A DNA stretch of 64,000 nucleotides from Haplodiscus bocki. Taxonomy: Eukaryota. The notes beneath the pieces are model-generated. The model worked only from the letters and a program-made list of their open reading frames with translations. It ran no database searches and was not told the origin of the DNA. Below, one piece after another: positions 1-64,000 of this stretch (its first letter is position 1; each line of letters starts with the position of its first letter). The position numbers were made by a program, and so were the translations under genes. The stretch covers positions 248,001 to 312,000 of the forward strand of contig CBFHFQ010000011.1 of assembly GCA_965655095.1 (NCBI GenBank). The letters run 5' to 3'.

Positions 1-1251
1 GTGCACGGTTGAACAGGTGACTAGGGGAGGGTAGGAAGGGGGAAGTTGGAGATAAATGCTGTCGTCTTACGACGCGTTGTGTTTTGAATCCATGTTGCTA
101 CAACTATTGAAAAAAACTTTTCTTCCCTCGAACATATCTCTAACAAGATACAAGTCTACAGCAACATTGGCACCCCAAAACGCTCAACGCGTCCACCATG
201 GCCTATCTACGCGCCGTAGGCGCTGAAACAACCTTTAGAAGTATGTGTTTTTCGCAAGTACATTCACATCTCCCTGATCGGGAAGATGTAAATGTACTTG
301 ACTGTTTTACGTTTTGTGATCAATTTTTCCGTCAAAACCTCCTCAACTGTCAAACCTACGCACCAATACGGAAAATAAACCTGACGTTGCACGTTTACGC
401 GGCCTTTGTGTCAGATTCCGAGCGGGGGAACAAAAAAAATTGTTCAAAAATTTCGTGACGAAATTTTTGAATTTCTGTTGGGAACTATTAAAAATGTCAT
501 AACTCAACGTCAGGTAAAGATAGAGAGACATTTTTTAGCGCATTTTTCTCCTCGTTTCATGGGGTTTCCACATGAATTCACTTGCTAATCTAGTTGTGTG
601 GACGAAACTCTACTTTTTGCTGCCTGAAGATGAAGAAAACAAAATGTCAAAATTTTTTGTTCATTTTCTAAGTAAAATTACTTCTTAACCAGGAATCCCA
701 GGAAGCTGAAAACGCGGGAAACATGCCAAATGGTTTGTCCCGTGAATAATTTGGGCAGGGGTTGCCCCCTGTGCACGTCATTTTCAAAAAAATGGGGAAA
801 ATCGGCAGAGACAGAACCTGAAAAATCAAAAAATGCGCAGAAAATGACAATTTTCTCGAGAATTATTTGTGCTAGAAACCTCACAAACCCCTCTATACAC
901 GCTACAGGAAGTGCTGAACAAAAGTAATGTCCGGGACCATGCCGCTCCGAGCAATCCCTGTTGAGATGTAGGCCGTCAAAATAAAAAAAGCCAAAAAATG
1001 GCCATTTTTGGACCCAAAAATTGAGTTTTTGGTCAACAAAATGATTTTTGCCGGCAAAATGCCACTAGGGACTTGTTCTTATATCATCAAATGGGAGCCG
1101 TATGCAAAATTTGGGCCAATTCTATTGGCTCGTTCTCGAGATCGGGGTTAGACTGTAACATGGGCCTTACGTTAAATTTTGGATAGAGGACTCGGGCTGG
1201 GGGCCCTACCCCGCCCTCGAAAGTTAAGATGGACCGTTGGGGCCGACCACC
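1..1251 (+). mobile_element. Non-autonomous unit A1 (first ~5 nt lie outside the window)
   Basis: The window start gtgcacggttgaacaggtgactagggg matches 1257 onward in A2. The unit is colinear with A2 and ends in GACCACC. Confidence 0.8.
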
Positions 1252-2506
1252 TAGACGTGCACGGTTGAACAGGTGACTAGGGGCGAGGAGATGGGAGAGG
1301 CTAGTAAAAGTCTTTGTCGTCTCGCGACCCGTTGTGCTTTGAGTCCATGTTGCAAAAAAACGTCTACTAATTTTCTTTTTTTATCAAACATCCCTCAAAC
1401 AAAATACAACAGTAGAGCAGCATTGGCACTCCAAAACGCTCAGCGCGTCCACCGTGGCCTCCCTACGCGCCGTAGGCGCTGAAACAATCTTTAGAAGTAT
1501 GTGTTTTTCGCAAGTACATTCACATCTCCCTGATCGGGAAGATGTAAATGTACTTGACTGTATTACGTTTTGTGATCCATTTTCTCATCAAAATCAGTTC
1601 AATTGTCAAACCTACGCACCAATACGAAAAGCACACGTGACGTTGCATGTTTCTTTGCCCTTTACGTCAGATTCCGAGCAGTGGAACAAGAAAAAACGTT
1701 CAAAAATTTCGTTACGAAATTTTTGATATTCTGTCGGGAACTACTAAAAATGTCACAAGTCAACGTCTCGCAAAGATAGAGCAACGATCTTTAGCGCATT
1801 TTTCTCCTCGTTTCGTGGGCTTTTCACATGCATTCACTTGCTAATCTAGTTGTGTGGACGAAACTCTACTTTTTGCTGCCTGAACATGAAGAAAACAAAA
1901 TCTCAAAAATTTTTGTCCATTTTCTAAGTAAAATTACTTCTGAACCAGATACGCCGGGAACCTGAAAACGCGGGAAACATGCCAAATGGTTTGCGCTGTG
2001 AGAAATTTGGGCAGGGGTTGCCCCCTGTGCAGGTCAATTTCAAAAAAATTGCGAAATTCGGCAGAGACACTACCTGAAAAACCAAAAAATGCGCGGAAAA
2101 CGTCAATTTTCTCAACAAGTATTTGTGCTAGAAACCTCACAAACCCCTCTATACACGCTACAGGAAGTGCTGAACAAAAGTAGCGTCCGGGACCATGCCG
2201 CTCCGAGTAACCCCTGTTGAGATATAGGCCTTCAAAATTAAAAAAGCCAAAAAATGGCCATTTTTAGACCCAAAAATTGAGTTTTTGGTCAACAAAATGA
2301 AATTTGCGGGCAAAATGCCACTAGGGACTTGTTCTTATATCATCAAATGGGAGCCGCATGCAAAATTTGGGCCAATTCTATTGGCTCGTTCCCGAGATCG
2401 GGGGTAGACTGGAAAAAGCGCCTTAAGTTGATTTTTGAGAAAGGACTCGGGCTGGGGGCCCTACCCCGCCCTCGAAAGTTAAGATGGACCGTTGGGGCCG
2501 ACCACC
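1252..2506 (+). mobile_element. Non-autonomous unit A2 (1255 bp)
   Basis: Starts TAGACGTGCAC and ends ggggccGACCACC. Diverged copy of A1. Confidence 0.82.
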
Positions 2507-3934
2507 TAGTGCTGGAGGCTAAGGTCAAAATAGGGCCGTTGTCTGAGAGTTTTTGAACTTTTGCTATGCTAATTTCAAGGATATTTTGAAAATTGACACC
2601 CGACTGATAAACAACACTCCACGTGTCGTCGCACTGCCTCCACTTCGCCACGCTTCGTTCCGGCTGAGTGCGACGACACGTGGAGTGTTGTTTATCAGTC
2701 CGGCTGCTAGGGTTTGCCTGAGATACTGGCGATAGGCCACCTCGTTACCGAAACGGAGTCAAAATTTCAATTTTGACCTTTTTGTTTTGAAACAGTTCGC
2801 CGTTCCCATTGCCCTGCGGACGAATGGGAACGGCGTCACTCTAAGTGACTCCCTTTCAAGCACTCTAGGCGTTGTTGTGGAGGTCCTGCAACTTCATTTC
2901 AAGCACCCGTGAAGACAAAACTTGTCAAAATAGAAAAAATCTGAAACTTTTGAAAACCATTTTCATTGGTAGTGAGGTTTTGAAAATTGAGCGCGTAGTC
3001 TTTTTGACAAACTGGCTCTAATGACTTCAAACTTCACATACGCCTTCTTGCACATCAGGGGAACCATTTATTGTTGCAGGTTGCAATCCGTAAAGTGCCC
3101 CAGAAAAAAGTTACGGCCAGTTGAAACACAAGGTTTCTGATGAAAATCTTGTCAGGTAGGTCAAATTTCGTGCCGCAAAAAATGTCAAAAAAATGAAAAG
3201 TTTTGGAAAAACAAAAACACACCAGGTAACTACATTATATGGGCTAACTATTGCAATACAGAATGAACCAATATCTTTCGTATGAAAAAAATGCCGCCAA
3301 AATGCATTTTATGACCAAAATCTCGAGAAAGTGTGGTTTTTTCCAAAAAAGTGGTCATAACTTTTTCCCACTTTGTTTCAGAGACTTTTTTCCTGCTAAG
3401 CATTTGTTACCCTTAGGATGGCCAACAAGGGGTAGTACCGCCTTGAAACCGCTCCGACCAGTGTGTGACGAGTTACGGGACCCTAAACCTGAAAAACACC
3501 TCTCTGACACCCATTTTTGACCATTTTCAAATTATCATAAGTCAACCTCAAAATGTCGTAGAGCAGCGTTCTTTAGCTCGCTGTTCCCGCCGGTTGACGT
3601 ACTTTCCGCATGCAGCCACTTGCAATACTAGTTGTGTGGACGAAGTTGGACTTTTTGGGCAAAAACCGTCAAAAAATGGAAAATAGGCGAAATTGACGTC
3701 ACAAAATGGCCAAAAAATCCAACTTTAAGAAAAAATTCGGAAAAACGCCAGTAGGGATTGTTGATTAGCTTGCTCAAACCTAAAAACATGCAAAAATTCA
3801 GCCAATTCTATAGGCTCGTTTCCAAAATCGCATTTTTTTCCAGCGTTTTTTATAAGTAAGTTTTCCATAAGGGAAGCCGCTACCGGGTCCCGTCCCCGCG
3901 CGGCAGAAAAAGTTGGAAAAAATCCCGGACCACC
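2507..3934 (+). mobile_element. Non-autonomous unit B1 (1428 bp)
   Basis: Starts TAGTGCTGGAGGCTAAGGTC and ends cccgGACCACC. Contains 34-bp and 13-bp inverted repeats. Confidence 0.82.
2602..2700. repeat. Perfect 34-bp inverted repeat with a 31-nt loop, present in every B unit with 0-few mismatches
   Basis: GACTGATAAACAACACTCCACGTGTCGTCGCACT (2602-2635) is the exact reverse complement of 2667-2700. Confidence 0.95.
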
Positions 3935-5369
3935 TAGCGCTGGAGGCTAAGGTCAAAATAGGGCCGTTGTCTGAGAGTATTTTAACCTTTTCTATAGTTT
4001 TTTCAATGATTTTCTGCTAGATAAGTGACACCTGACTGTTAAACAACACTCCACGTGTCGTCGCACACCCTCCACTTCGCCACGCTCCGTTCCGGCTGAT
4101 TGCGACGACACGCGGAGTGTTGTTTATCAGTCCGGCAGCCAGGGGTTTGCCTGAGCTAGTGGCGAGAGACAACCTGGTTACCGAAACGGAGTCGAAATTT
4201 CAATTTTGACCTTTTTGTTTTGAAAGAGTTCGCCGTTCCCATTGCCCTGCGGACGAATGGGAACGGCGTCACTCTGAGTGACTCCCTTTCAAGCACTCTA
4301 GGTGTTGTCTTGGAGGTCCTGCAACTTCATTTGAACCACCCGTAAAGATAAAAAAATGTCAAAAATGGAAAAGTCTGAAATTTTTGAAAACCATTATCAA
4401 TGGTGGTGAAGTTTTGAAAATTGAGCGCGTCGTCTTTCTGACAAACTATTTCTAATGACTTGAAACTTCACATACGCGTTGATGCGCACTAGGGAAACTA
4501 TTTATGGCTGCTGGTAACATTCCGTAAAGTGCCCCAGAAAAAAGTTATGGCCAGTTGAAACACAAGGATTCTGATCAAAATGTTGTCAGGTAGGTCAAAT
4601 TTCGTGCCCCGAAAATTGTCCAAAAAAAGAATAGTTTTGGAAAAACAAAAACACACCAGCTAACTACATTATATGGGCTAACTATTGCAATACAGAATGA
4701 ACCAATATCTTTCGTACGAAAAAAATGCCGCCGAATTGCATTTTATGAGGAAAATTTCGGAAAAGTGTGGTTTTTTCCAAAAAAGTGGTCATAACTTTTT
4801 CCCACTTTGTTTTACAGACTTTTTTCCTGCTAAGCATTTGTTCACCTATGGATGGGAGACAAGGGGTAGTACCGCCTTGAAACCGCTCCGAACATTGTGT
4901 GACGAGTTACGGGACCTTAAACCTGAAAAACACCTCTCTGACACCCTTTTTTGACAAATTTCAAAAAATCGTAAGTCAACGTCAGAATGTCGTAGAGCAG
5001 CGTTCTTTAGCTCGTTGTTCCCACCGATTGACGTACTTTCCGCATGCAGCCACTTGCAATACTAGTTGTGTGGACGAAGTTGGACTTTTTGGCCAAAAAC
5101 CGTCAAAAAATGGAAAATAGGCGAAATTGACGTCACAAAATGGCCAAAAAAACCAACTTTAAGAAAAAATTCGGAAAAACGCCAGTAGGGATTGTTGATT
5201 AGCTTGCTCAAACCTAAAAACATGCAAAATTTCAGCCAATTCTATAGGCTCGTTTCCAAAATCGTATTTTTTTCAAGCAAAATTTATAAAGTCTATTTTC
5301 CATAAGGGAAGCCGCTACCGGGTCCCGTCCCCGCGCGGCCTGAGAGGTTAGGAAACATCCCGGACCACC
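3935..5369 (+). mobile_element. Non-autonomous unit B2 (1435 bp)
   Basis: Starts TAGCGCTGGAGGC and ends GACCACC. Appears identical to B5. Confidence 0.82.
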
Positions 5370-6803
5370 TAGCGCTGGAGGCTAAGGTCAAAATAGGGCC
5401 GTTGTCACGATGTTTTTTGCTTCTTTTATGTTAATTTCAATGATTTTCTTGTTAGAATACTGACACCCGACTGATAAACAACACTCCACGTGTCGTCGCA
5501 CTGCCTCCACTTCGCCACGCTCCGTTCCGGCTGAGTGCGACGACACGTGGAGTGCTGTTTATCAGTCTGAACGCAAATGCTTTGCATGACATAGTGGCGA
5601 AAGGCCATCTGATTACCTGAACGGAGTCAAGATTTCAATTTTGACCTTTTTGTTTTGAAAGAGTTCGCCGTTCCCATTGCCCTGCGGACGAATGGGAACG
5701 GCGTCACTCTGAGTGACTCCCTTTCAAGCACTCTAGATGTTGTCTTGGAGGTCCTGCAACTTCATTTGAACCACCCGTAAAGATAAAAAAATGTCAAAAA
5801 TGGAAAAGTCTGAATTTTTTGAAAACCTTTTTCAATGGTAGGGAAGTTTTGAAATTTGAGCACATAGTCTTTTCGACAAACTATCTCTAATGACTTGAAA
5901 CTTCACATACGCGTTGATGCGCACCAGGGGAACTATTTATGGCTGCTGGTAACATTCCGTAAAGTGCCCCAGAAAAAAGTTATGGCCAGTTGAAACACAA
6001 GGATTCTGATGAAAATGTTGTCAGGTAGGTCAAAATTCGTGCCCCGAAAATTGTCAAAAAAATGAAAAGTTTTGGAAAACCAAAAACACACCAGCTAATT
6101 ACATCATATGGGCTAACTATTGGAATACAGATTGAACCAATATCTTTTGTACGAAAAAAATGCCGCCGGATTGCATTTTATTAGGAAAATTTCGAAAAAC
6201 TGAGGTTTTTTCCAAAAAAGTGGTCATAACTTTTTCCCACTTTGTTTCACGGACTTTTTTCCTGCTAAGCATTTGTTCACCTATGGATAGGCAACAAGGG
6301 GTAGTAACGCCTTGAAACCGCTCCGACCAGTGTGTGACGAGTTACGGGACCCTAAACCTGAAAAACACCTCTCTGACACCCATTTTTGACCATTTTCAAA
6401 TTATCATAAGTCAACGTCAAAATGTCGTAGAGCAGCGTTCTTTAGCTCACTGTTCCCGCCGGTTGACGTACTTTCCGCATGCAGCCACTTGCAATACTAG
6501 TTGTGTGGACGAAGTTGGACTTTTTGGGCAAAAACCGTCAAAAAATGGAAAATAGGCGAAATTGACGTCACAAAATGGCCAAAAAATCCAACTTTAAGAA
6601 AAAATTCGGAAAAACACCAGTAGGGATTGTTGATTAGCTTGCTCAAACCTAAAAACATGCAAAAATTCAGCCAATTCTATAGGCTCGTTTCCAAAATCGC
6701 ATTTTTTTCCAGCGTTTTTTATAAGTAAGTTTTCCATAAGGGAAGCCGCTACCGGGTCCCGTCCCCGCGCGGCAGAAAAAGTTGGAAAAAATCCCGGACC
6801 ACC
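5370..6803 (+). mobile_element. Non-autonomous unit B3 (1434 bp)
   Basis: Same termini as the other B units. The middle is B2-like and the 3' part is B1-like. Confidence 0.82.
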
Positions 6804-7852
6804 CAGTGGAGGCACCGGTGAAAATCACCAGGTGGCGGTCACTGGAGAAGCTCCTCTGAAATATGAAATATTACTGATAGTCTTTTCTTCGAACACAGTA
6901 TTGAGTTTTGCAAAGGCCTGTTTAATAAATTGAAAATGAGCCTGTGAAATCTTCATTGAAATCTACAGGACATCAAAAACGAAGCTTGCAAACAGTTCGG
7001 CCCCGTTGTTTCTCCGTGTCGCTTCGCTAATCTACGAAACAACGGGGCGGGGCAATTAACAATTTGAAAGTTGAAATTTTTTTTTTTTAATTTTCGGGCC
7101 AAATTATGATTGTTTTTCCAAAAAACTTCAATATTTCAACCCACAAAAAAAACTAAAATTCAAAAAAACTATGCAGTAAGAAAAGTTTGGAAAAAAAACT
7201 GGACAAAACAAATGCCAGATATGAATTCTACAATCAAAACTGAGTGTTTCGAAAACTTTATTTTTTTTTCGAAAAATTCGTCATAACCGTCATTTCTTTC
7301 GGCGAAATGGCCAAAAATTTTTTATCGTCGAAAAATTATCTTTCAAGTTATGGAGTCAATTTCATACTGGAGGCACTCCAGAGCGCAAACTATGTACTTC
7401 AATGTGGGAGCTATGACGAAATGATCGATTTTCGGCATTTTTTTCCAAATTTGATGCGTCATATCTCCACACCTATGACGAGTTGGTAGAAAATTTTTTG
7501 CATGTGTGTAGCCAACAGGTATTATGCTTTACACAAAAAGTTTCGGCCAAATGCATGTGGTTACTTGCAGGGCTGTTGGTAGAAAACTGCAAAAAGAGGC
7601 CAAAAAATAGAATCATCTTGTCATAATTCCCCAACCATTTTTGCTAGAAGGATCTAACTTGCACCAATGTTCATAGAATTGTAAATTGTGCCTGCATGCA
7701 AAGTTTGAATCAAATCGTATGGGTGGGAGCTGAGATCGCTAATTCCCTATACCGTTTGTGCATATTTGTTTTTTCTTATATTTTAACGCTCGGCAAAGGG
7801 GCCGCTCCCCCGCCTCGCAAAGACTAATGTGGGGCGCGATCCCCTGACCACC
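6804..7852 (+). mobile_element. Non-autonomous unit C1 (1049 bp)
   Basis: Starts CAGTGGAGGCACCGGTGAAAATCACC and ends cccctGACCACC. The last ~575 bp are homologous to the 3' end of H. Confidence 0.85.
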
Positions 7853-8901
7853 CAGTGGAGGCACCGGTGAAAATCACCAGGTGGCGGTCACTGGTTATGC
7901 CATTCTGAAACTTGAACAAACTTGCTAGTGTTTTCTTTCAACACAGTAATGATTTTTGCAAATGCATTTTTTATATATTGATATTTAGCATGTGAAATCT
8001 TCACCGATCTGGATGAGACATCGATGATGGAGCTTGCAAACATTTTGGCCCCGTTGTTTCTCCGTGTCGCTCCGCTAGTCTACGAAACAACGGGGCGGGG
8101 CAATTAACAATTTGACTTTTGATAAATTTTTCCTCAAATTTGGACCAAATTATGATTGTTTTACCAAAAAACTTCAAAACTTCGACCCACAAAAAAGGTT
8201 AAATTTCGAGATAAACTTTGCAGTGAGAAAACTTTGTAGAGAAATTGAACAAAACAATTGCCAGATATGAATTCTACAAGTAAAACTGTGTTTTTGGAAA
8301 ATTTTATTTTTTTTCTTTCGAAAAGTTCGTCATAACCGTCATTTCTTTCGGCAAAATGGCCGAAAATTTTTTATCGTCGAAAAATTATCTTTCAAGTTAT
8401 GGAGTCAATTTCATACTGGAGCCACTCCAGAGCGCAAACTAGGTACTTCAATGTGAGAGATATGACGAAATGATCGATTTTTGGCATTTTTTTCCAAATT
8501 TGATCCGTCATATCTCAACACCTATGACGAGTTGGTCAAAAATTTTTTGCATGCGTGTAGCCCTTAGTTATTCTGCTTCACACGAAAAGTTTTGGCCAAA
8601 TGCATGTGGTTATTTGCAGGGCTCTCGGTAAAAAACTGCAAAATGAGGCCAAAAAACAGAATCATCCCGTCATAATTCCCCAACCAAATTGGCTAGAATG
8701 ATCTAACTTGCATCATTGTTCATAGAATTGTAAACTATGCCTGCATGCAAAGTTTCATCAAAATCGTATGGGTGGGAGCTGAGATCGCTAATTCCCTATA
8801 CCGTATGTGCATATTTGTTTTTTCTTATATTTTAACGCTCGGCAAAGGGGCCCCTCCCCCGCCTCGCAAGGACTAATGTGGGGCGCAATCCCCTGACCAC
8901 C
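7853..8901 (+). mobile_element. Non-autonomous unit C2 (1049 bp)
   Basis: Same termini as C1 and colinear with it. Confidence 0.85.
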
Positions 8902-9951
8902 CAGTGGAGGCACCGGTGAAAATCACCAGGTGGCGGTCACTGGAGAGGCACCTCTGAAACATGAACATTTGCTGATAGTCTTTTCTTCGAACACAGTATT
9001 GATTTTTGCAAACGCATGTTTTATGCATTGAAATTGAGCCTGTGAAATCTTCGTTGATGTCGAAAGGACATCGAGGATGAAACGTGCGAAAGTTTTGGCC
9101 CCGTTGTTTCTCCGTGTCGCTTCGCTAATCTACGAAACAACGGGGCGGGGCAATTAACACTTTGACTTGTGAGAAATTTTCCCTCACTTTTGGACCAAAT
9201 TAAATACTAATTTTTCCCCGGAAAAACTTCAAAACTTCAACCCACGAAAGATGCTAAATTTCAGAAAGCTACGCAGTAAGAGAATTCTGAAGAAAAACTG
9301 GAGAAAGAAATGCCAGATTTGAATTCCTGAATGAAAACTGGGTTTTTGGAAATTTTCAATTTTTTTTTCTGATTTTTTCGTCATAACCGTCATTTTTTTC
9401 GGCAAAATGGCCAAAAACTTTTTATCGTCGAAAAATTGTCTTTCAAGTTATGGAGTCAATTTCACAATGGAGCCGCTGCAGAACGCAATCTATGTGCATC
9501 AAAGTGGGAGGTATGACGAAAAGATCGATTTTCGGCATTTTTTTCCAACTTTGATCCGTCACATCTCAACACCTATGACGAGTTGGTAGAAAATCTTTTG
9601 CATGCGTTTAGCCCTTAGTTATTCTGCTTCACACGAAAAGTTTCGGCCAAATGCATGTGGTTACTTGCAGGGCTGTCGGTAAAAAACTGCAAAATGAGGC
9701 CAAAAAACAGAATCATCCCGTCATAATTCCTCAACCATTTTTGCTAGAATGATCTAACTTGCACCATTGTTCTTAGAATTGAAAGTTATGTCCGCATGCA
9801 AAGTTTGATCCAAATCGTATGGGTGGGAGCTGAGATCGCTATTTTCCTATACCGTATTTGCATAGAGTTGTTTCTTATATTTTAACGCGAGGCAAAGGGG
9901 CCCCTCCCCCGCCTCGCAAGGACTAATGTGGGGCGCGATCCCCTGACCACC
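8902..9951 (+). mobile_element. Non-autonomous unit C3 (1050 bp)
   Basis: Same termini as C1 and colinear with it. Followed by a B unit. Confidence 0.85.
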
Positions 9952-11387
9952 TAGCGCTGGAGGCTAAGGTCAAAATAGGGCCGTTGTCTGGTAGTATTTT
10001 AACTTTTGCTATAATAATTTAAATGATATTTTTGTTACAAAACTGACACCCGACTGATAAACAACACTCCACGTGTCGTCGCACTGCCTCCACTTCGCCA
10101 CGCTTCGTTCCGGCTGAGTGCGGCGACACGTGGAGCGTTGTTTATCAGTCTGGCCGCCTATTGTTTGCGTCAGCTACAGGCGATAGGCCACCTGGTTACC
10201 GGAACGGAGTGTAGATTTCAGTTTTGACCTTTTTGTTTTGAAAGAGTTCGCCGATCCCTTTGCCCTGCGGACGAATGGGAACGGCGTCACTCTGAGGGGC
10301 TTAACTTCTACTACTCTAGACGTTGCTTTGGAAGTCTTGCAACTTCATTTGAGCCACCCGTGAAGATAAAAAGTTGTCAAAATAGAAAAAATCTGAAATT
10401 TTTGAAAAACAATTTCAATGGTAGTGAAGTTTTGAAAATTGAGAGCATAGACTTTCTGACAAACTGCTTCTAAAGACTTGAAACTTCACATACGCCTTGC
10501 CGCCTACCAGGGGAGCTTTTTATAGCTGCTGGTACCAATCCATAAAGTGCCCCAGAAAAAAGTTATGGCCAGTTAAATCACAACGATTCTCATGAAAATC
10601 TTGTCAGGTGGGTCAAAATTCGTGGCCTGAAAAATGTCGAAAAAATGAAAATTTTTCGAAAAACAAAAACACACCGGCCAATTACATCCAATGGGCTAAC
10701 TATTGCAACACAGAACGAACCAATACCGTTAGTACGAAAAAAATGCCGCCAGATTGCATTTTATGAGCAAAATTTCGAAAAAGTGTGGTTTTTTTCAAAA
10801 AAGGGGTCATAACTTTTTCCCACTTTGTTTTGTGGACTTTTTCCCTGCTAAACATTTGTTGACCTATGGATGGGCAACAAGGGGTAGTACCGCCTTGAAA
10901 CCGCTGCGACCAGTGTGTGACGAGTTACGGGACCCTAAACCTCAAAAACACCTCTCTCACACCCTTTTTTGACCAATTTCAAAATATCATAAGTCAACGT
11001 CAAATTGCCGTAGAGCAGCGTTCTTTAGCTGGTTGTTCCTACCGAATGACGTACTTTCCGCATGCAGCCACTTGCAATACTAGTTGTGTGGACGAAGTTG
11101 GACTTTTTGGCCAAAAACCGTCAAAAAACGGAAAATAGGCGAAATTGACGTCACAAAATGGCAAAAAAATCCAACTTTAAGAAAAAATCCGGGAAAACGC
11201 CAGTAGGGAATGTTGATTAGCTTGCTCATACCTAAAAACATGCAAAATTTCAGCCAATTCTATAGGCTCATATCCAAAATCGTATTTTTTTCCACCCAAA
11301 AATTACAAGTAAGATTTCCCACAGGGGGTGCCGCTACCGGGTCCCTCCCCGGGCGGCCTGAGAGGTTGAAAAACGTTCCGGACCACC
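9952..11387 (+). mobile_element. Non-autonomous unit B4 (1436 bp)
   Basis: B termini. Near-identical to B6. Confidence 0.82.
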
Positions 11388-47129: not shown

Positions 47130-47706
47130 AAAGTCGTACTTTAGGAGAAAGCCGCTCAAAAACTTATGGATTAGTTTCGGATAATTGTTTTACTTGCTCA
47201 CAAACTTCCTTGCCTTGACAGCGATACGCATCGACTGCATAGTGGTGCATTGGTGAACTTCGCTTTATGTTATGCTGCAACCGCATCGGCTGCAGAGTGA
47301 TGTACCAAGTAGCACGTGCAACAACATGAACCTTTTTGCTGGAAACGATAATGCTTCGACTGCATAGTGTTGCATTATCTATTTTGCAGTTGAGATGATT
47401 TGTTGCTAATTACTTGTATGTGTCTGTTTAATTCATTAGCTTGAGGGGATTGACTTTCACTGAACCTGATCTGATGGACTTTAATATTCCAAGCACTAGA
47501 AACAGTCCATTTAAAAATGCGCCGTTAATTTTGGACAATAGAAATTAGGTTACTTTCAAGTTTTTTTGAAAAACAATTATAATCATACGTTAATTGACAA
47601 ATTTTGACATTGTTGATTGAGGCACTCTTGTTACTGTATCCCCGTATTCGGGGATGATACCTGAAGCTGCAGAAACCGACGTTTTTCACAGTGCTTCCAG
47701 ATCATT

Positions 47707-52540: not shown

Positions 52541-53597
52541 CAGTGGAGGCAACGGTGAAATTCACCAGTTGGCGGCCACTGGTTCTTTTTTTGTGCCAGT
52601 ACATGTATTTTCTCTGTTCCTATGAAACGTTCCATGTTAGGTACTTTCCCCAGTTTGATTCAAAAACTACATATTTAGAGACTTCTGTCATAAAAACTTA
52701 CAAAAGTGGATAAAAGAAGTTATGTCGAAATGTTTTCAGCCCCGATTTTCCTCCGAAACGCTGCGCTAATCTACGGAAAAACGGGGCGAAGGTAATGCTA
52801 ATTTTGGTTCTCAATTTTTGTCCTTTATTTATAGGTATTTCAACCGTTTGTTTGTTTTTTGAAAGAACTTCAGGAACTTTCCTCTACGTGAACCTTCTAC
52901 TTGATCTTGACCTCTTCCCAAAGGGAGAAGATTTTGGGCGAAAAAATCGGGCAACTTAACATCGGAAAAAATTCTACTGTCAAAAATAAAATTTTCTGAG
53001 TTTTTGGTTTTTTTTCCGGGAATTTCGTCATAACCGTCATTATTTTCGGCAATTTGACCAAAACTGTTTTTTTTGTCGGAAAATTATTTTTCATTTGACA
53101 CAGGTCCCGTCACGTTGTGACGAAAGCTCACATCACTTTTTTAACATCAACGTGGGAGAAATGACAAATTGGTCGATTTTGGCCTATTTTTGACAAATTT
53201 GAAAGGTCATATCTCCTAGGGCAAAAGGCCCTGGCCAAAAACTTTTGGCATGTAGGTAGTCCACAACAATTGTGCTTCACACAAAAAATTTTAGTCCAAT
53301 GCTATGGTTAAAGTGTGGAGATATTGCGAAAAATACATCGAAACCTGCCAAAAAACAGGATCATTGCGTCATATCTCCCCAACCAAAACAAAAACAATTA
53401 TGTAGGTGCCAAATATCTTCATACATCGGCGGACTCTAGCCACATGCAAAGTTTGATCGAAATCGTATGGTTAGGTTTCGAGATCGTCTCCTTTTCGGCG
53501 GGTTCAGTGTAAGTGTAAACTTGATTTTTGAAGCTCGGCACAGGGCCCCTCCCCCGCCTCGCAACATGGTTTTGTGGGGCTAAAGAGCGTGACCACC
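52541..53597 (+). mobile_element. Non-autonomous unit D3 (1057 bp)
   Basis: D termini. Appears identical to D2 at offset 19143. Confidence 0.83.
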
Positions 53598-54642
53598 CAG
53601 TGGAGGCACCGGTGAAAATCACCAGGTGGCGGTCACTGGTTATGCCATTCTGAAACTTCAACAAATTTGCTAGTGTTTTCTTTCAATGCAGTAATGATTT
53701 TTGCAAATGCATTTTTTATATATTGAAATTTACCATGTGAAATCTTCACCGATCTGGATGAGACATCGATGATGGAGCTTGCAAACATTTAGGCCCCGTT
53801 GTTTCTCCGTGTCGCTTCGCTAATCCACGAAACAACGGGGCGGGGCAAATAACATTTTAGCAATTGTGGTGAATTTTTTAAACAGAAACGCCTCACAGTT
53901 TGATTTTTTTTTCGCAGAATGACTTTTACTACAAAGTTTACCCCAAGTTGAAGAAACATTTGCACCAAAGCAGTTTGCGAAAAAAATCCGACCACAAAAA
54001 TATCAGAAACGAATTCTACGAGGAAAATTGAGTTTTTTGTTCAAAAAAATTTTTTTTCGGAAAATTCGTCATAACCGTCATATTTTTCGGCAAACTGGCC
54101 AAAACTTTTTAATCATCTGAAAATTATCTTTCAAGTTATGGAGTCAATTTCAGACTGGAGCCACTCCAGAACGCAAGCTATGTACTTCAATGTGGGAGCT
54201 ATGACGAAATGATCGCTTTTCGGCATTTTTTTCCCACTTTGAGCCGTCATAACTCCACACCTATGACGAGTTGATAGAAAGTTTCTGGCATGCGTGTAGC
54301 CCTTAGTCATTATGCTTCACACAAAAAGTTTCGGCCAAATGCATGTGGGTGCTTGCAGGGCTGTCGGTTAAAAACTGCAAAAAATGAGGCCAAAAAACAG
54401 AATCATCCTGTCATAATTCCCCAACCAATTTTGCTAGAATGATCTAACTTGCACCATTGTTCTTAGAATTGAAAGTTATGCCCGCATGCATAGTTTGATC
54501 CAAATCGTATGGGTGGGAGCTGAGATCGCTAATTCCCTATACCGTTTGTGCATATTTGTTATTTCCTATATTTTAACGCGAGGCAAAGGGGCCCCTCCCC
54601 CGCCTCGCAAGGACTAATGTGGGGCGCAATCCCCTGACCACC
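53598..54642 (+). mobile_element. Non-autonomous unit C6 (1045 bp)
   Basis: C termini and internal hairpin. Confidence 0.85.
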
Positions 54643-57600
54643 CAGTGGAGGCGACGGCGAAAATTACTAGAGGGCGTGAGGTTTGAATCCGTGTTTCTTT
54701 CGTGTTCAGATTTATTTTCTGCGACAAACGGGCGTAGTCCTTTCATTGTGCGTCAGTCAACGTGAAGTAATATGTTGTCGGTTTTTGTGACGAAGACAAA
54801 AAATGCCCTTTAGGTGCCAAATATTGACAAAGTAATCGTTAATCCCGATTCCAGATTGTTGTTCTAACTTCTCTGTTTCCGGCATGAGAGGTAATTTTGT
54901 TTTTCTGTAGAAGCACTGGCTTTGTCGATGCAGTTCGAAAAGGTGCAGTTAGGTGGTGAATACGAACGGGGCCGAAGTCTGCAGAGCAATGAACAGTTGT
55001 TATCTTGGAACAAAATATGTTTCTGTTGACATTTCAGTTTAATAGCTGCTTTTGAGCTTTTTCTCCAGCTAGCAAAATTCTGCGTTATTGTCTAATTCAT
55101 TTCTATAATTTATTCGTACTTAAAATAATAAATGTGAATAAAGGTTTGTTTTAAACTCGAAATTGTTATCTCAACTTTTGCTGTTTCTTTTGCAGCTGTT
55201 TCCAGAGAAATCGTTTTTTGTCTCTCATAGCTGTTTTTGTTTCTTTAAACAAAGAAAAAACTTGATTGGTGTTCAATTACGCACTCCAAAGGTATGTTTG
55301 GCTTCTGCCTTGGTGGAAGAAACAAATGTTTTGCTGCTTCTAATGTCTTCTGCAGGGATAGTCATGATAATGGAACTTTGCAACGGGATACTAATATTTA
55401 ATGAACAAACATCAGAATTTGGAAACGGGTGGCTTGCAGGAACCTTACGCGTTGTTTGAACCTCAAAAATCACGACGAAGGTTCTCCAGTTTCTGATACC
55501 AATGAGACTCATTTTCAAGGGTTCCAATGATTGTTATGACTTAAATTGGTTTTTTTTTAAAAATATGTCTAAATAATATCAACCACCCCTTCCTCCGCTT
55601 TCGAATTTTAATTTCTGAATAGTTTTGTTAATGAAATTTTACTGTTCACAAAAAGAGGCAACGGTATGATGCCTTATTTGTGATCGGCGCCAAATGCAAA
55701 ATTTTTTTCCGGGCTTCTGTGGTTTTCTTTTAAGGGAAACGTTGCATTGCGCATCTAGTAGGTAATTTTTATTTTTTCTTTGTTTTGTTTTGTAATGGAT
55801 AACACGATTGATCACAATCATTTCTTGATTTAAGGCTTCCTGCGGTGTAGCTCTATCTTTTTAATTGAATCAACCGTTTCTTGACGGCAATGGTCCCGTT
55901 TCCCCTTGTAGTGGTATGAAGTTTCACTGACCAATATTGTTGTTCAATCAGCACTTGATTAGAAAATCAGTGAAAGCTACTGCACGCTTAATTGTGGCTT
56001 GATGTTTTCCCGTTAATTCGCTTTCTTCATTTGTTTACAAGGTTGTGCGAGCTACTTTTCTCTAAATAATTTCGTTTTCTATTCACGACTTCCGATTGAC
56101 ATGACTGTGCTGCTTTTGCGGTCAACATATTTGGAAAACGCACCCAACCAATTTTCCGAAATGCTGTTTTCCTATATATAATTACCTTCTTTCAAGACTG
56201 TACTGACAATTCAAAATTTCTCATGTTTTCGCGGAATCAATGAGTTTCGATACTCCGGATTGAGCAGTTAACGGAGCATTTCTTCAGCTGTATAATTCTA
56301 TCAATTGTTCAACATTTTACCGAGTTTCGAATTAGTCCTTCCGTTGTTTGAATTTTTTCCTCATCTTAAATAATTGAATTTCCTGAAGCATTTTATTTTT
56401 TTTTATTGTTGATATTACTATTTTATTCACAACGTTTTTCTTCCAATTCCAATCCTGATACTCTGATCCCCCAGAGTCATTTGCATTTTTGCTGGACGGA
56501 TGACAATTCACTTCTTCAACCTTATGCTAGATCGACTGTTCACGTTTGACATATGTTACACCAAAGACATATATAAACCCTCGTTGAAGTTTGTAAAGTG
56601 ATTGATTAAAAATTAAAACGTATTTCAATTTTAACTTTATAAACATCTGTTTAATATGCGTAACGTTTTCTCACGTGTAATTGCTGGCTGTGGAAGGTTT
56701 CATTTAGGAAATATTATTTTCATTAATTGTCAATTTTCTCTCTTGGGCTAGCTTCGACGTTTAAAACTCAATGCTTTCGAATCTTGAGGTCCACGTTGAG
56801 GCTCCTTTTTTTCCTGCAGTACAGATTTAAAGAAATGACTCCACGGCCAGAAATTCAAAATTTCAAATAAACTTTACTTGTAATAGATCAGCCGAAAGAT
56901 GATCTTTATCTAAATGTCAATAGACGGAATCAAGACACAATAAGAAACAACGGCGTGATAGCCATATTGATCAAAGACTTTAAGCAATTCAGTTTTTCAA
57001 GTTCAAGATGGAAACTATATCGCAACGATTAAATGTGTCCGAAAAATGCTAGGCAGTTGGAATTGCTCAAACCTATGGCACTTTTAGAACCTCCTTGATC
57101 CAATTTTTTTATGTTTTCATCAAGGTTTTTCCCATCTGGATTCTTGAAACTTACCCTCTGTTCTATGAGTGTGCCTGTTCAACTATCAACGTTGACAAAA
57201 CGACATGAAAAAGACAGCGAATACAGTTTGAACAATTTGTTACTAAGCTCTTGATTTTAAGAAGGTTCCCAACGTTGAAGTGTTATGAAAAAATTACTAA
57301 ATTCATTCTTTTGACGCCCAAAAACTTTCAGTAGTGGTTTACGTTGTAGTTCACTGAGATGAGCCCTGAATATTTGATTCTCAAATTTTGTGAGAGAAAA
57401 AGAGAATTCGACGAAGAATGGTGGAAATGTAAAGCTTCCCATTGTTTCTCCCAACTGAAACAAAATTGTTGTAGCAACAATTCTCTCTACCCCCGTCATT
57501 TTTATGAAATGGTTATTAAATGCATTTTTTTAGACTACAGAACTCATGAGCTTCTTCCTATATTAAATGTGGTCTCTGTTCGTCTTGTATAAGTCATTTT

Positions 57601-60600
57601 TTTCGGAATATGGACAGACCTTTTCATTTTTACATCTGTTAAAACAAGCTACATGTTTTATAGGTGAAACAAAGTTACTGATTTCTTTCAGGCCCTTGAA
57701 AACGAGAATTTTTTACCTGCAACAACTAAATTAAATTGATGCCTGGTTTACACCAGTCGGAAGCACTAAGAACCTCTCAAAAACTTTTGTGGCCTTACTT
57801 TTACGCAACTTCAGTTACTTGCTGCGATTTTTTGCCAAAAATTTTCAATTTTCCAAATTGTTTGTGAAACTGAAAGTTTACGTCGTGTCTGATTGAAGTC
57901 AGTAAATCTGCTGAGGAAGCCTTGGTTTTGCTCCATTCCGTTCGCAAAACCAAGGCGCCTGGTTTATGAATGGTTGGAAACGAATTATGATTTTTTACCG
58001 TACTGGCTTATCTTTTCCGCTGCATCGACCCTTAAAATTAACTAGACAGGCAACGGTTTGTAATCGAACCTCAAAAGACTTTGCTCAAACGACAATTTGA
58101 TGTATTTACCTGCTATACGAATTTGCCTGCAATTTATTCAACGTGTGGTTGTATTGTAACTTTTTGTTCTTTCATATAGTTATGATCCCATTGAACTAAT
58201 GTCTGTTGTGTTTGACAATGTCAAAGCAAAACAGCAAAGGAAACTTAAAGCGTCGACGTTGTACTTCCTGTGGACAATTTGTTGGAGAACATCATGTGTG
58301 TGCAAAATCAATTGAAGTTGAACTTCAGGCCAATGAGTCTTTAGGAATTTTATACAAAATTCCCGATGCTTCAGTTTCTGTCTCACCTGCCGCGAGAACG
58401 GAGATACACAGCTCGCTGAACACTTTGGGGTTGATTGACTTTTGGAAGCCTATAGTAACAGCTATCGGAAATGATACAGTTATCTGCTCCACGCAGCCAG
58501 TCCGGGTAACAGCAGTGCTTGGGGACGGTAATTGCCTTTTTTCCTCTCTGGCAGTTGCTCTCGGGCTGTCACATGAATGTGGCCCAATCATACGAAACAT
58601 TATTGTCAGCCACATGAATTTAATCAGTTTCCCCCCTAATAGCCTGCAAACATCTGTTTACTCCGACGACTTTCCCAACCAACATCATATTTTGAATTGT
58701 ACTTCCGTCCATGAGTACCTCCGCGAATCTAGAATGGCAGAAAATGGCGTTTTTGGAAGCTGTGTTGAAATATATTCATTTTGCCAAATCTTCAAAGTCG
58801 ATGTTTTTTTGTACCATGTTCCGTTCCAATCCTGGATGATTTATGAATGTTCCTCCAACGTAAATCGAGAAGGAATTTTCATTCAACAAAACAGGAATGC
58901 AAATCACTTCGAGGTGATAACAGAGCTAGTTTCACTTGGTCCTGAAAGCTCCAGCGTAGCGCAAGTTGCATCAATTGATCGCCCTTTTTCTCAATTAAGC
59001 GAAAATAATCACCGGACTGTAGCATTGCAGAACTGCGAAGCAACTGCAACTGAACCAGCTTCGAAAAAAAGAAAAGTCCATTCTGATTACGCCTGGGAAG
59101 AGCACCCAAAGACTCTCGCAACAAGTCCCTTGAACATTTCAGTATCTACCAATATGAAGAGACTTTCGGCCTTGGAAACATTATCAACAAATTCAGCGGA
59201 CCTCCTAAACAACGATTGTTCACAAATGCTGGACGCCCCATGTTCTGCCTTTTCCAGAACAGATAGTGTTTCAACAAATATGCACACGAACAACGAGTGC
59301 CCCAGTTCGGGCGGATCTGACTGTTGCGCAAAATGCATGCGCCAGTCAACAGTTCTTTACCCTTTAAAATTGACGAGGAAGAACAAACTTGATCTTAAAA
59401 ACCGTGTGTTTGGACACAAGCTAACGCAGCCCATTGTTGCTTTATGTAAGCCCTGTCTTCTCTATTGCACAACCGAAAGTTATGATTGGTACAATGCTTG
59501 GCCGTCTGTGTTTTTCAGCCTATTGAGTGATCAAGACAGGCCAGCTAGAACCCAAATGGATATTTTGTCTTTGTTACCTTGGTAATTGAGACAGCAGTGG
59601 ATGACATCCATGCACTACTTTCCCCTTTGCGTTCAAAGATGTCTAAGTCAGAAACGGATTTCTGGGAAATGTTCCGTTGATGGGACGCTTCGTTTGCGTC
59701 GTTTCCAGAAACTCATGAAAACCTTAAAGCAGACTAACATAGCTCTTGCCCTGGACAATGAACCTTATCCCAACGTCCGCTGCCCATATGGGTGCTGGTG
59801 TTTCATTGAAGAATCAGGTTGGATACCCGCAAATCACTTCATCAACTTTTTTGAGAGAAACTTTACCTCGTTCCAGTCCTCCAGCCTCCTGCATCTAAGA
59901 GGAATTAGGTCCGACTTTTTAACACCATTTGTGTCCCTGCGCCAGTTCCTAGTAGCAACTACAGTGCGAGTTGATGAAAAAGTGGGACTCGTGGTTCAGA
60001 CTTGCTCCATGCACTCAAGAGGCTCCAGTGTGCAGTACTTTCATCCGCCATCACATCCTTCGCTGGGGCGAACTACAGTGAATTATGAAGAACGTCTTAG
60101 TGCGATCGCACCCACATTGTCGTTCGTCTCCAGCATCAAAGCCAACTTCGCAAGTCATACATACCAATTGCTAAGAAGTGTTGGCTCTTACAGTGGAATG
60201 AGCACAGTCCGATTGAAGCGGAAAACGCGCTGGGATTTCACTAGTGACATTTTGTATCATGCTGAAGGCGTCGCCTGTCACTTCAGAGAAGACATTAAAA
60301 CAATGATTCGTGAGTGGGTAAGACAGGGTAAAATCCTTGATGACGTAGCTTCGGGAATGCTGGATTATGTACCGGACAATAAGAAAGTCAACAGTTGTTT
60401 GTCACAGGCCACTTCAATAGACTTACAAACATGCCTGGACCTCACAAAAATAGTGGAAAAGAATGAAAAAGAGTATCTCAACAATGCTGAGCTGTTGAGC
60501 TGTTACACTCTCGTTCATGGGAATGATGATTACGGTTGCTCTCCACCTCCTCTAGAAAATAGAGTTAGCATAGTTTCGTGGATTGTGCAGGCTGCAGCTT

Positions 60601-63600
60601 GTGTTTCCCCAATACTTTGTCGTTCCTTAGTGAACTCTTCAAATTACAGTGTGACACTTAGGCCTTTGTTCACTTTACTCAGGAAAGTGTTGCTTGGCAC
60701 CGGAAGAATGAATACAGCAAGAGTTTTATGTCTTGTTGAAAAATCCGAACAAGCTGTATCAGCTGTAATTGAACAAAATAAAAGTGATGACAAAACAGAA
60801 GGAACAGCCGACTGTTGTTGTTTTGTAGGAGCAAGGTTTCTATCAAAAATTTGTAACACCATTCAACACTTTCCCTTAGACAAACGGAAAAATATCGGTT
60901 CAGCCACCAGAGAGCACGTTTCGTACAACATGACCCATGCCATTTTTACGACAGGTTCCCCAAAAAGTTTGCGGAACAAGGTTGAACCACCGTTAACCCT
61001 GATTATTTCCGACAATGAATTTGAATTGATCGCAGTTGGAACGAAGGATGGAAGCAGCAAGGGAGAACCGAGGTGGTTAGTTAGACATGGAGGAAAGTTT
61101 CAAGGGTTTTGGCTCATTGAGAAAAGTACAAAATTTGCCAAAAAAACAGAAGGTTCCCCGACTGATAACTTGGAAACTTTAATTCGGGGATATTGGACAA
61201 TTGCGATTTATCAAATATCGAGAAATGTTGAATTGATTGATTTGAAGTGGAAATTTCTGAGCACTTTGACCGGTCAGGGTATTTTTATTTGTGGACATCA
61301 CACAATTCCTTTAACCAGAGACTTCAGGAAGAGTGGTTTCCAATGTAGATGTCGTCGTGCATCGTTTTTGCGCTGCCCGCATTTGCAATGCTACTCTTGC
61401 GTTTGCAAGCGTCACTTCAATGAAGGTCTACAGCAGCAACACAGACGTATTTTAATTGATTCAGTACCGTTGGAGAACTTAAATAAAACGAATTCCCCTT
61501 CTATAGTATCGGAATCATCTTCCTCACGGGATTTTATTGATCCCAACATCATCTCTGCAACTGAACCAATTCAACCAGATGCGGCAACAGAAACGTTTGA
61601 GATTGCATCAAGCAACAGTTCTTCTGTCAGTTTTATTCTTCATCCGGAAAGAAATAACGAAGAATTCGAAGATGACAACGTGAGAATAATGGCAACATTA
61701 AAAACCAACCCTGATGAAAAACTGATTTCCGTGGATCATGAACGAAAAGAAGATGCTTTCAAACTACCGCTCCATATTCTTTTAAACTCACAATGCAATC
61801 TTCTTTATCGACGTAACGTGAATCCAATCAGCCTTTCCCTGAAAGAAAAACGTTTCCTTGAAAATATTTCAGCTACTTCGACGTCTGCATTACCGCTCAT
61901 TCAGCCCGAAGCTCTTCTTTTCCCATCGATTTTTTGGTGTCAAGCTAGCAGCGGCAGTTTTCAAGGAGCAATACCAACTGCTTTATACAATTCATCCAAG
62001 TACAACAAACAGCTGGGTTTCGCTGGTTTGGATGACATGCTTCGAACTCGAATCAAAGACGGTTCTCTTTTGACATCTTGCAATCCTACTTATTTGCAGT
62101 ATGTGTTTGATTGCCTGTTGAACATGCAGCTTCATAAAAGTGACATTAGGCTAATACTAAATCGAGGATGGCAAGAAGTTAATTCTGCTCCTCGTAATTG
62201 CTCATTCGTTTCGACTCAAACTTTCAAGTTTGATTGTGCGGAAAGTCGAAAAAATGTCTGCGAACTTGCGGCTTTAATTAGAGACAAAAATCCAACCTAC
62301 TTTGTGACCTACACTTGTAGTCAATCGACGCACCCGGGGATTCGGAAAATCTTTGAAGCACTGCATGAAATGTATCCCGCAGAAACCACTCCCAAGGAAG
62401 TACTTTCAGCAGCAATTCAAGCTGAACTCATGCCCATGCTCAGGTCTTGGCACCGCGCCTCTCAATATGTAATGGAATGGGTGAAAAATTCACCAGAAAA
62501 ACCACTGGGTCCTGTGTCTCATATTTGGATGAGGTACGAATGGCAGGAAGAGACAGCTGGCTTTCCTCACTTGCATGCTATTTTGTGCACACCAGAAGAT
62601 AAATTTAGTGATGATGTACGATCTCGTGTTTGCTGTTCAAAACAAACGTTTTTGGGTGGCTTAGAAGTCAGTTGCCCCGAATTGGACGCAGTCGAACGTT
62701 TCCATCTGGGTGAACTTTACCAAAAGTATCAAACCCATAACTGTTCCAAAGGTCGTAAACGTTGCCATAAGAAGACAGACAGGATGGAGAAACCAATTTG
62801 TCGTGTGCCTAAATATCCTCCTTCGAATTGTTTTTCTTTCAAGGAAATTCCTGTGAACTTTTCCTGCGAAACAATGGGACTTCTGCGAGAAATGGATTTA
62901 GCAGACATAGATGAAAACTCGCTAGTCCCAAAAGTGAAAGATCCTTTAACCGCCGGAAAACATCATTATCCCACTGTTTCTAACGAACATTATTCACCAA
63001 CGAACGCTGCTCTTTTTGCTTTGACACAATCCAGCACCAATGTTCAAATATGTGACGACTACATGGCCCCCCGCTACGTTGCAAAATATGCAGCCGGCAT
63101 TGAATCTCGAGCAGTTGCCAAAATTGTCGCTGGTGAAACAGAAAATAGTGTCAAAGTCTTGACAGAACCAATCGCACATGAAAAAATAGCTGGGGTACAG
63201 GCTTCGCTAAAGAAATTGAGAGGCGATGAAAAACAAAAATCGGTAACTGGTCGTGTTGTCAGCATAACAGAGTGTCTCTGGTGGTCCTTACAACTTCCGT
63301 ATGTCTGTACAAATGTCGATTTTGTTCACGTGCCAACTGTTCCCAAAGAATATCGATCTGGAATTGTCACTGAAAAACGATTTAGCAATATTATTAAGTT
63401 GGGCGCCACATTCATGGAAGGAATCCGAGTTCGGAAACACGTTTTACAACTCCCAAAGCACCGGCAGTTCACTAGGACACAAAGTTTTCTTCTCGCAGAT
63501 GTTGAAAACAGCTCTATTTCGCCAGACAAAGTAACAGTTTTTGGACTCCGCCCACCTGAACTTTTGTTTGTCTCGAAGTTAAAAAATTACTACAGTTGGT

Positions 63601-64000
63601 TTGTTCGTTGTAAACCGCAAACAAAAAAATCCATCAGCAATCATGAAGTGTTCTTGAAGAGAAGCCTCCGCAGAAGTTGTTGGGTTGATGCATTGGGGTA
63701 TTTGGTTAAACTACGCCCTTGTTCTGTGGACGCTTTTGTAAAATTCTGTCGTGCAAATGGTACCGATGGACGGGATGGGATTCTGAAACGCGAAATGAGA
63801 ATACACATTGTTCCGTTGCTTGTGACGAAAAACGCGTCACAATTTGTTGCTCAGTGGAAGCAGTTGTCCGAAGAAAATGCCGTGGTTGTTTTCAGTAACA
63901 TTTTGCCGAATAACCCAACTAAATTTCTACTACATTTGCTCTTGACTAATGGAGAATTCGACACAGAGATGGACATTCTGAACGTGCAATCTTTCAGAGA
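54643..64000 (+). mobile_element. Helitron-like element H3, near-identical to H2 and truncated by the window edge
   Basis: Starts CAGTGGAGGCGACGGCGAAAATTAC. Colinear with H2 at offset ~19146. Confidence 0.9.
58218..64000 (+). pseudogene. RepHel gene of H3 with a premature stop; continues past the window
   Basis: Matches the H2 ORF, but GAA is TAA at 59583-59585. The downstream sequence stays colinear with H2 through the Rep motifs. Confidence 0.85.

Follow-up and report, generated by a model that had tools for sequence, protein, structure and literature searches.

Helitron-like elements of several families that appear to insert into their own end-to-end joints in Haplodiscus bocki

Helitrons are regarded as elements of loose target choice, inserting between A and T or between two T residues, and tandem arrays of them are taken to arise as a side effect of terminator bypass. 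Among HUH enzymes, integration at copies of the enzyme's own origin or nick site is known for the Rep protein of adeno-associated virus (AAV) at AAVS1, for TrwC at oriT-like sequences, and for IS91/ISCR and IS200/IS605. Homotypic Helitron arrays, found in Myotis, Bombyx, the Y chromosome of D. pseudoobscura, plant centromeres, and Hydractinia subtelomeres, have been attributed to rolling-circle replication or terminator bypass, and the literature remarks that distantly related Helitrons sometimes lie directly adjacent in bat and maize. Helitron circles with joined ends are known from the Helraiser work, according to the passages of PMC5148889 and PMC6431247 that cite it; for Helentrons, it has been proposed that the target mirrors the ends of the element itself (PMC4067079), and the one report of a GIY-YIG nuclease in a Helitron-like element comes from Sphagnum (PMC11417382). 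Here, we analyzed a stretch of 64,000 nucleotides from Haplodiscus bocki (GenBank assembly GCA_965655095.1, contig CBFHFQ010000011.1, positions 248,001 to 312,000 of the forward strand), hereafter called the window, in which units of five families abut in one orientation and the largest family, H, encodes a Rep-helicase protein (RepHel). This array appears to consist of several Helitron-like families that insert into their own end-to-end joints.

Units, joints, and tracts of identity

The 10-mer GACCACCYAG was found 19 times in the window, on the + strand only, against 0.07 matches expected from shuffled sequences, and on this strand the 7-mer GACCACC was detected at those 19 sites only. On the minus strand, GACCACC occurs four times inside the units of the window, and none of these sites is occupied by an insertion. 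We defined the units by cutting the window directly after each 7-mer, and this generated 20 units of five families in the order A A B B B C C C B B B H D C D C H D C H, i.e., two A, six B, six C, three D, and three H, the last H being cut by the window end. The family sizes were 1.25 kb for A, 1.43 kb for B, 1.05 kb for C, 1.06 kb for D, and about 17.04 kb for H. Within a family, the lengths varied by no more than about 10 bp (C, 1041–1050 bp; D, 1057–1061 bp; B, 1428–1436 bp; H, 17,037–17,045 bp), indicating that the window contains neither spacers nor nested insertions. There were no runs of N in the window, and the base composition of the host DNA is about 40% G+C. These results bear out the original prediction, made from the letters of the window, which had claimed 20 units of five kinds abutting in one orientation and free of spacers, and all the transitions that it had listed (A>B, B>C, C>B, B>H, H>D, D>C, C>D, and C>H) were present. 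It had also claimed that the joint is invariant, and this holds for the + strand 7-mer inside the window; related loci, however, carry variants, and what they have in common is the core CCA-C-AG.

The window was then compared with nine related loci from the same species, eight of them in the long-read metagenome assembly ERZ26859043 and one on a short-read scaffold of another sample; the species identity is based on the first H unit of the window (14259-31295), which is 99.2–99.6% identical to three copies there. The nine loci added 25 junctions to the 19 of the window, giving 44 in ten stretches. The original prediction had asked how many unit ends flank unique DNA rather than another unit, and this census, which was run in part, showed that at the 44 junctions all the unit ends adjoin another unit in the same orientation and none adjoins non-unit DNA. 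No duplicated bases were detected at any of the 44 joins, none of which showed a host target. By our own tabulation of these junctions, there are at least 20 unlike-family combinations, and further families, named H2, H2', H3, X, and A-like, take part in them; the H-type 3' end alone is followed by five unit types, i.e., D, C, H3, H2, and B. The sole imprecise join among the stretches of this species was observed at L002:2626-2627, where the final 58 bp of a D unit are missing, hairpin and 7-mer included, and the unit runs into unrelated sequence; this is probably an ordinary deletion. An assembly artefact was considered as the source of the joints and is unlikely, because the same joints were found in independent assemblies.

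The comparison of near-identical units showed that their neighbours change while the units do not. Ten pairs of units that are 98–100% identical have unrelated neighbours, with the identity ending at the junction, and the pairs with matching flanks were two, both from a single segmental duplication. An H variant of 16.9 kb is present on three contigs (L251:914-17805, L252:1-14299, and L253:1-9453), where it is followed by H2, B, and C, respectively. Its copies show 0–9 differences over 9.4–14.1 kb, with none in 9,453 bp between L252 and L253 and four (three mismatches and one gap) in 14,117 bp between L251 and L252, and they cease to match directly after the final base of the 7-mer. When the first H of the window is compared with its copies in ERZ26859043, the left neighbours are B, H2, and H2', and the right neighbour is D or H3; similarly, among copies of H2 that are 99.1% alike, the left neighbour is D at one locus and H at another. 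Inside the window, the B units at 3935-5369 and 11388-12822 are 100% identical, and the match extends past the unit by 10 bp on its left side and 37 bp on its right. The B units at 9952-11387 and 12823-14258 are 99.8% identical and have non-homologous flanks, C and B for the former and B and H for the latter. Adjacent units of the same family were just 82–92% alike, and the identical copies were non-adjacent, the reverse of the pattern expected from rolling-circle read-through or from local homogenisation. From these alignments, we consider that read-through, block duplication, or gene conversion alone cannot yield tracts of identity that end at junctions. The original prediction had held that read-through or unequal crossing-over alone explains the joins between unlike families poorly, and the ten pairs with unrelated neighbours uphold it. 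Gene conversion was also considered as the source of the identical units and was rejected, as the tracts end at junctions between non-homologous flanks.

Host recombination has nevertheless left its marks in the array. The segment at 33257-52399, of 19,143 bp, has a tandem duplicate on the same (+) strand at 52400-64000, and its left-hand breakpoint falls 141 bp within the 3' ends of two units, a C and an H, that are homologous in this part. The second H>D, D>C, and C>H transitions, which are inside the duplication, are thus copies and not independent joins, and the same event also produced C>D at 33391 and H>D at 52534, because the crossover took place in the C/H 3' homology just upstream. 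With breakpoints in homologous ends, the duplication leaves fewer than 19 independent joins in the window. Within this otherwise almost identical 19-kb duplication, a patch of about 840 bp (34648-35484 versus 53791-54631) is about 9% divergent, and from its sequence it resembles a conversion tract, one C unit having been converted by another copy. A satellite or higher-order repeat, in which neighbours are the most alike, does not describe the array as a whole; the 19,143-bp duplication is the one event that does fit such a repeat.

All units of the window read on the + strand. Two A units (1-1251, cut by the window start, and 1252-2506) are non-coding, 88% alike, and start with TAGACGTGCACGG. 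They are followed by three B units (2507-3934, 3935-5369, and 5370-6803; 90–92% alike), by three C units (6804-7852, 7853-8901, and 8902-9951; 86–87% alike, with about 600 bp at the 3' side homologous to the H 3' end), and by three more B units (9952-11387, 11388-12822, and 12823-14258). Then come the first H unit, of autonomous type and 17,037 bp (14259-31295), and the units D (31296-32356), C (32357-33397), D (33398-34454), and C (34455-35495). The second H unit (35496-52540; 17,045 bp) is autonomous and bears the sole intact RepHel gene of the window; after it, the array continues with D (52541-53597), C (53598-54642), and the third H (54643-64000, cut by the window end). The region 7790-7900 is an example of a C-to-C junction, with the boundary between 7852 and 7853. 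The start positions of the remaining 18 junction 10-mers are 1245, 2500, 3928, 5363, 6797, 8895, 9945, 11381, 12816, 14252, 31289, 32350, 33391, 34448, 35489, 52534, 53591, and 54636. Inside the first D unit, a T-rich tandem repeat of 30 bp in 2.6 copies was observed at 31766-31844.

Unit ends, non-coding units, and the RepHel enzyme

The position of the boundary could be read from two patterns. The Y of YAG tracks the right-hand unit, being T ahead of A and B and C ahead of C, D, and H, and one right-hand unit type, H3, comes after three different 7-mers. The 7-mer thus belongs to the left unit and the boundary lies at GACCACC/YAG, as the original prediction had placed it. Variants of the 7-mer at the related loci were GGCCACC, AACCAAC, AACCACC, TTCCACC, and GACTACA. 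The alignment of 16 different 3' ends showed the invariant core CCA-C-AG and a conserved G/C-rich box 25–60 nt upstream, and conservation of the 7-mer and of this box is far stronger than that of the 5' ends; the latter vary among A, B, C/D/H, and the units of a second organism. When folded as single strands, C and D left the six bases GACCAC unpaired, flanked by a 3' hairpin on one side and, on the other, by a 5' hairpin starting from C/CAGTGG (z of -2.8 and -3.1). The 3' hairpin was supported with the same scores at ends of the C/D/H type and was unsupported for A and B. In seven of seven representative units, covering the five families, the first 40 nt matched the reverse complement of the last 80 nt no better than shuffled sequences did, so subterminal or terminal inverted repeats were not detected. 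T tracts are absent at both unit ends, where the joint is CCACC/YAG and not the TT or TC at which Helentrons and Helitron2 (HLE2) elements insert. Likewise, the units begin with YAG and finish with ..CCACC, and this departs from the structure of canonical Helitrons (HLE1).

The scans of the A–D units of the window gave no conserved open reading frame (ORF), no tRNA, and no Rfam match. However, about 600 bp at the 3' side of C were 87–94% identical to H, and about 575 bp at the 3' end of D were 92–95% identical to the second autonomous family, H2. This corrects the original prediction on these units, since C derives in part from H, and D from H2. By their shared sequence, C and D are partial derivatives of autonomous elements, and the units A–D are non-autonomous riders that retained the end signals.

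The intact RepHel ORF (39060-47129, + strand) lies inside the H unit at 35496-52540 and encodes 2,689 amino acids. From its N-terminal side, we detected a weak OTU domain (about 39375-39674, E 0.0023), a Rep domain of the Helitron_like_N family (43095-43436, 30.6 bits with a cut-off of 28.9), a PIF1 helicase (45267-45749, amino acids 2070–2230, PF05970, E 9e-11), and a C-terminal GIY-YIG nuclease (46761-46988, PF01541, E 1e-9), all on the + strand. The HUH motifs of this ORF are FFTYTC at amino acid 1366, PH(I/L)HA at 1454, and the two-tyrosine motif YVAKY at 1624. All three motifs recur in relatives whose RepHel is 40–96% identical, and motif 1 and the HUH histidines were invariant in an alignment of six sequences. 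The OTU domain passed the cut-off in the relative P0011 (27.3 bits versus 23.3). In the PDB, PIF1 helicases matched RepHel, Helraiser matched in the helicase part (E 5.6e-5), and the GIY-YIG domain resembled SLX1 entries, while a profile of the Rep region found no relative there. Collectively, these data show that H is a genuine Helitron-like autonomous element by the enzymatic definition, as the original prediction had taken it to be. Judged by its domains, the layout of RepHel is that of Helentrons with GIY-YIG in place of the AP endonuclease that Helentrons carry at the C-terminus, a class assignment drawn from domain layout, with termini and target differing.

Two of the three RepHel genes of the window are disabled by single stop codons, the one at 39060-47129 being the only intact copy. 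In the first H (14259-31295), one in-frame stop near 20742 (20742-20744) splits the gene into ORFs at 18165-20744 and 20802-25907 on the + strand, and in the last H (54643-64000) there is a nonsense change at 59583 (59583-59585). The 16.9-kb H variant has its RepHel broken into three to four ORFs, and yet it exists as virtually identical copies on three contigs, suggesting that decayed autonomous units are still copied, presumably in trans. Downstream of RepHel, an ORF of 336 amino acids (28681-29691 and 49894-50904, + strand) was kept in eight of the eight autonomous-type units compared, with 61–98% amino acid identity and many invariant cysteines. It matched no Pfam family, and its AlphaFold model, with a mean pLDDT of 31, was unusable.

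The joint was also found in a second organism. One contig of the sample ERZ25074608 carries two autonomous elements in the same orientation, separated by 122 kb, with RepHel proteins 58% and 40% identical to that of the window. Both are followed by small units at GACCACC/YAG or ..CCACC/YAG, with the same upstream box. At L250:22268-22287, also in this organism, the junction 10-mer occurs twice in direct tandem, once as 7-mer+CCG and once as 7-mer+CAG, forming a "unit" of 10 bp that may be the footprint of an excision or of abortive joining at the nick site. No junction motif was found at a further locus, L249, whose RepHel is 49% identical, and its ends were not definable. At L248:1408-1704, a few kb from the array, there is a CAP-Gly exon (E 2e-24), either a host gene at the array edge or a captured fragment; the left edge of this array could not be placed, and nothing recognisable was present at about 2110-7400.

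The protein collection held 24 relatives of RepHel, all from European Nucleotide Archive (ENA) metagenome or Logan assemblies and none of them named, and four clusters at 90% identity comprised 437 members. Several contigs of 0.16–0.9 Mb carried three or four RepHel fragments each, so the arrays may be very long. A loose scan for junctions with variable gaps in metagenome, genome, and viral contigs returned about 240 loci, all of them chance matches with no similarity to the window.

Proposed mechanism and competing explanations

Rep-mediated integration of whole units, targeted to the units' own junctions, is in our judgement the best explanation of these sequence data, and we hold it to be reasonably probable. 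Such a mechanism could work as follows. The nick site of Rep would be the joint itself, composed of the 3' end of one unit (the G/C-rich box, the hairpin, and ..CCACC) and the YAG.. of the next. Rep would nick the + strand at CCACC/YAG, the PIF1-type helicase would peel this strand as far as the next junction or a later one, and the second tyrosine of Rep would cut there and close a single-stranded circle of one or more whole units in which the joint is re-created. If the only good integration substrates are sequences identical to the joint, these circles would be strand-transferred into chromosomal junctions, and the C-terminal GIY-YIG domain, similar to SLX1, may cut or resolve the second strand. 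Arrays would then grow by insertion of whole units in one orientation, with neither spacers nor target duplications and with any family after any other. The non-coding units A–D and the decayed H units, which keep the end signals, would be moved in trans, and host homologous recombination between shared 3' ends would afterwards reshuffle the array by crossing-over and gene conversion.

A joint that serves as start, terminator, and target would account for the single orientation, the precision to one nucleotide, and the free combination of families; it would equally account for the lack of nesting, for young copies lying among old ones, and for the mobilisation in trans of non-coding or decayed units. 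The original prediction had proposed that units are released as circles and inserted by Rep at existing junctions, and the array, the protein domains, and the junction-bounded identity fit this idea, which is still one about mechanism that we infer from them. In a more general form, to which we give an even chance, a eukaryotic HUH Rep-helicase works as an integrase specific for the junction of its own circles, with GIY-YIG serving the second strand, and sustains a guild of elements that accrete into one-way cassette arrays, a counterpart of integron exchange.

Other explanations were weighed against targeted integration at whole joints. The insertion could be directed to a half-site, i.e., directly after any resident 3' end (the hairpin and ..CCACC) or before any 5' end, so that a solitary 3' end, or a genomic sequence resembling one, would be targeted too, in a manner resembling IS91/ISCR and IS200/IS605. 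Every observation that favours targeting of the whole joint fits this idea equally well, and the far better conservation of the 7-mer and upstream box over the 5' ends speaks for it; the invariant AG past the cut, however, suggests that the 5' side is read too, and we regard half-site targeting as unlikely. Alternatively, Rep could join circles of different families outside the chromosome, where they would be copied by the rolling-circle mode and would integrate en bloc, or the arrays could themselves be episomal. Rep-type proteins can start at one origin and terminate at another, as happens in rolling-circle plasmids, and two observations agree with such concatemers: contig coverages range from 37x to 73x in one assembly, and a 17.3-kb scaffold from another sample contains little more than a single H unit, bordered on either side by a junction. 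Rolling-circle copying should nonetheless give runs of identical neighbours, when same-family neighbours are 82–92% alike; all the fetched loci are on contigs marked as linear, of 45 kb to 1.55 Mb, and the array of the second organism lies a few kb from the host-like CAP-Gly exon, unless this is a captured fragment. Concatemers thus seem to us very unlikely.

Read-through of the terminator followed by en-bloc transposition of the composites to ordinary targets has precedents, as end bypass and homotypic tandem arrays are documented (PMC5148889, PMC4067079, and the paper on the D. pseudoobscura Y chromosome), and some adjacencies do recur across loci, e.g., H>D in the window and in L245. This process, however, carries along existing neighbours only and creates no new precise join, and near-identical H 3' ends are followed by D, C, H3, H2, and B, which makes it highly improbable as a full account. 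The last possibility is that host recombination acted alone, the array being a satellite-like repeat shaped by unequal crossing-over, conversion, and microhomology at the shared 10–17 bp, with no part for Rep. The breakpoints of the 19,143-bp duplication within homologous C/H 3' ends and the conversion-like patch at 34648-35484 are the kind of traces that it predicts. It would leave unexplained at least 20 unlike-family joins made with single-nucleotide precision, the tracts of identity ending exactly at junctions of non-homologous flanks, and the absence of local homogenisation. Moreover, the joint is conserved across RepHel lineages that are just 40% identical, and at least one intact RepHel and nearly identical copies point to current activity, so host recombination by itself is hardly credible.

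Several points weigh against the proposed integration at whole joints. Circle formation, the position of the nick, the chemistry of integration, and the part played by GIY-YIG are all inferred. The sampling of loci was anchored on RepHel genes with 10-kb flanks, and this favours array interiors; the ten protein-anchored look-ups found neither array ends nor solo copies nor empty sites, those from the species of the window being all inside arrays. The 5' ends of A, B, and H gave no significant hairpin on folding. In the second organism, a degenerate 3' end, GACTAAC, is separated by a spacer of 17 nt from a CAGTGG start at L248:9956-9986, and this start lies about 20 bp ahead of the ORF of the autonomous unit; no other join had a spacer. 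The unoccupied internal 7-mers, four on the minus strand and a few on the plus strand, are too few to define the specificity of insertion. Finally, as the alignments indicate, ordinary unequal crossing-over also remodels the array and is responsible for part of its irregular order.

Comparison with known systems

By their termini, target, and nuclease, the elements fall outside the structural definitions of canonical Helitrons and of Helentrons, and they fall within the enzymatic definition of Helitron-like elements. They resemble Helentrons or HLE2 elements and the short HINE/DINE-1 elements in the giant ORF with OTU, Rep, PIF1, and nuclease domains and in the abundance of short non-coding partners that share the ends only (PMC4067079, PMC5148889, and PMC11417382). 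Hairpins, as in those elements, are supported near the C/D/H-type ends, and no target duplication was visible at the joins, which are all between units. Furthermore, it has been put forward that the T-tract target of Helentrons mirrors their own termini (PMC4067079). The elements described here differ in having an SLX1-like GIY-YIG nuclease, ..CCACC/YAG.. termini, and no significant subterminal inverted repeats, and in that all the copies seen are in mixed arrays and none is dispersed. HelenSM92 of Sphagnum magellanicum is an HLE2 element reported to combine RepHel and GIY-YIG as well (PMC11417382); compared by its description, it differs in using TT sites and having short terminal inverted repeats, its GIY-YIG is deemed captured, and no arrays are described for it (PMC11417382). 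The OTU-Rep-PIF1-GIY-YIG architecture of RepHel is documented here, and otherwise our protein search found it only in unnamed ENA and Logan proteins.

With the homotypic Helitron arrays, the array shares the head-to-tail joined ends. Those arrays, however, consist of a single family, often truncated, among dispersed copies, whereas here at least eight families, autonomous and non-autonomous, follow one another irregularly through one joint, and the neighbours are not the closest relatives. The telomere-targeting Helitrons of Paramecium are similar in forming a divergent clade with giant ORFs, in their strict orientation and specific integration, and in having many non-autonomous derivatives and building whole genomic compartments (PMC13085455). 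Their target, by contrast, is the telomeric C4A2 repeat of the host, and telomeric repeats separate the units (PMC13085455); our scan of the window found no telomere repeats, unlike those arrays. In open-access papers and bioRxiv, we found no multi-family Helitron arrays built on one site and no Helitron that targets its own joint, the subscription literature and Repbase lying outside this search.

If the proposed integration is true, a Helitron Rep would be able to act as a sequence-specific integrase at its own joint of about 10 nt, and this would explain how large mixed compartments of rolling-circle repeats can arise without damage to genes. The short site and the intact gene for an enzyme of 2,689 amino acids would also make a tractable system for the integration step of Helitrons, which is poorly understood. 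In addition, it would be a eukaryotic addition to the few HUH enzymes that integrate at a defined sequence, with practical interest for targeted insertion of single-stranded DNA.

The original prediction had likened the array to an integron, and the functional likeness stands: the units have the same orientation, they are bounded by a conserved core site that folds as a single strand, and they would be exchanged by excision and reinsertion of circles, which here are a conjecture. Of the components that define an integron (IntI, attI, and cassettes bounded by attC), none was found, and the only enzyme gene is RepHel; the comparison is thus an analogy. The enzyme is a HUH Rep with a helicase and not a tyrosine recombinase, its gene forms one of the units, the array lies in a eukaryote, the small units have neither genes nor a promoter logic, and no sign of a privileged, attI-like entry point was seen. 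The HUH integrators introduced above, i.e., AAV Rep, TrwC, IS91/ISCR, and IS200/IS605, share with the elements of H. bocki a target that copies the enzyme's own origin or nick site; they belong to other protein families and hosts, and none of them builds arrays of several families.

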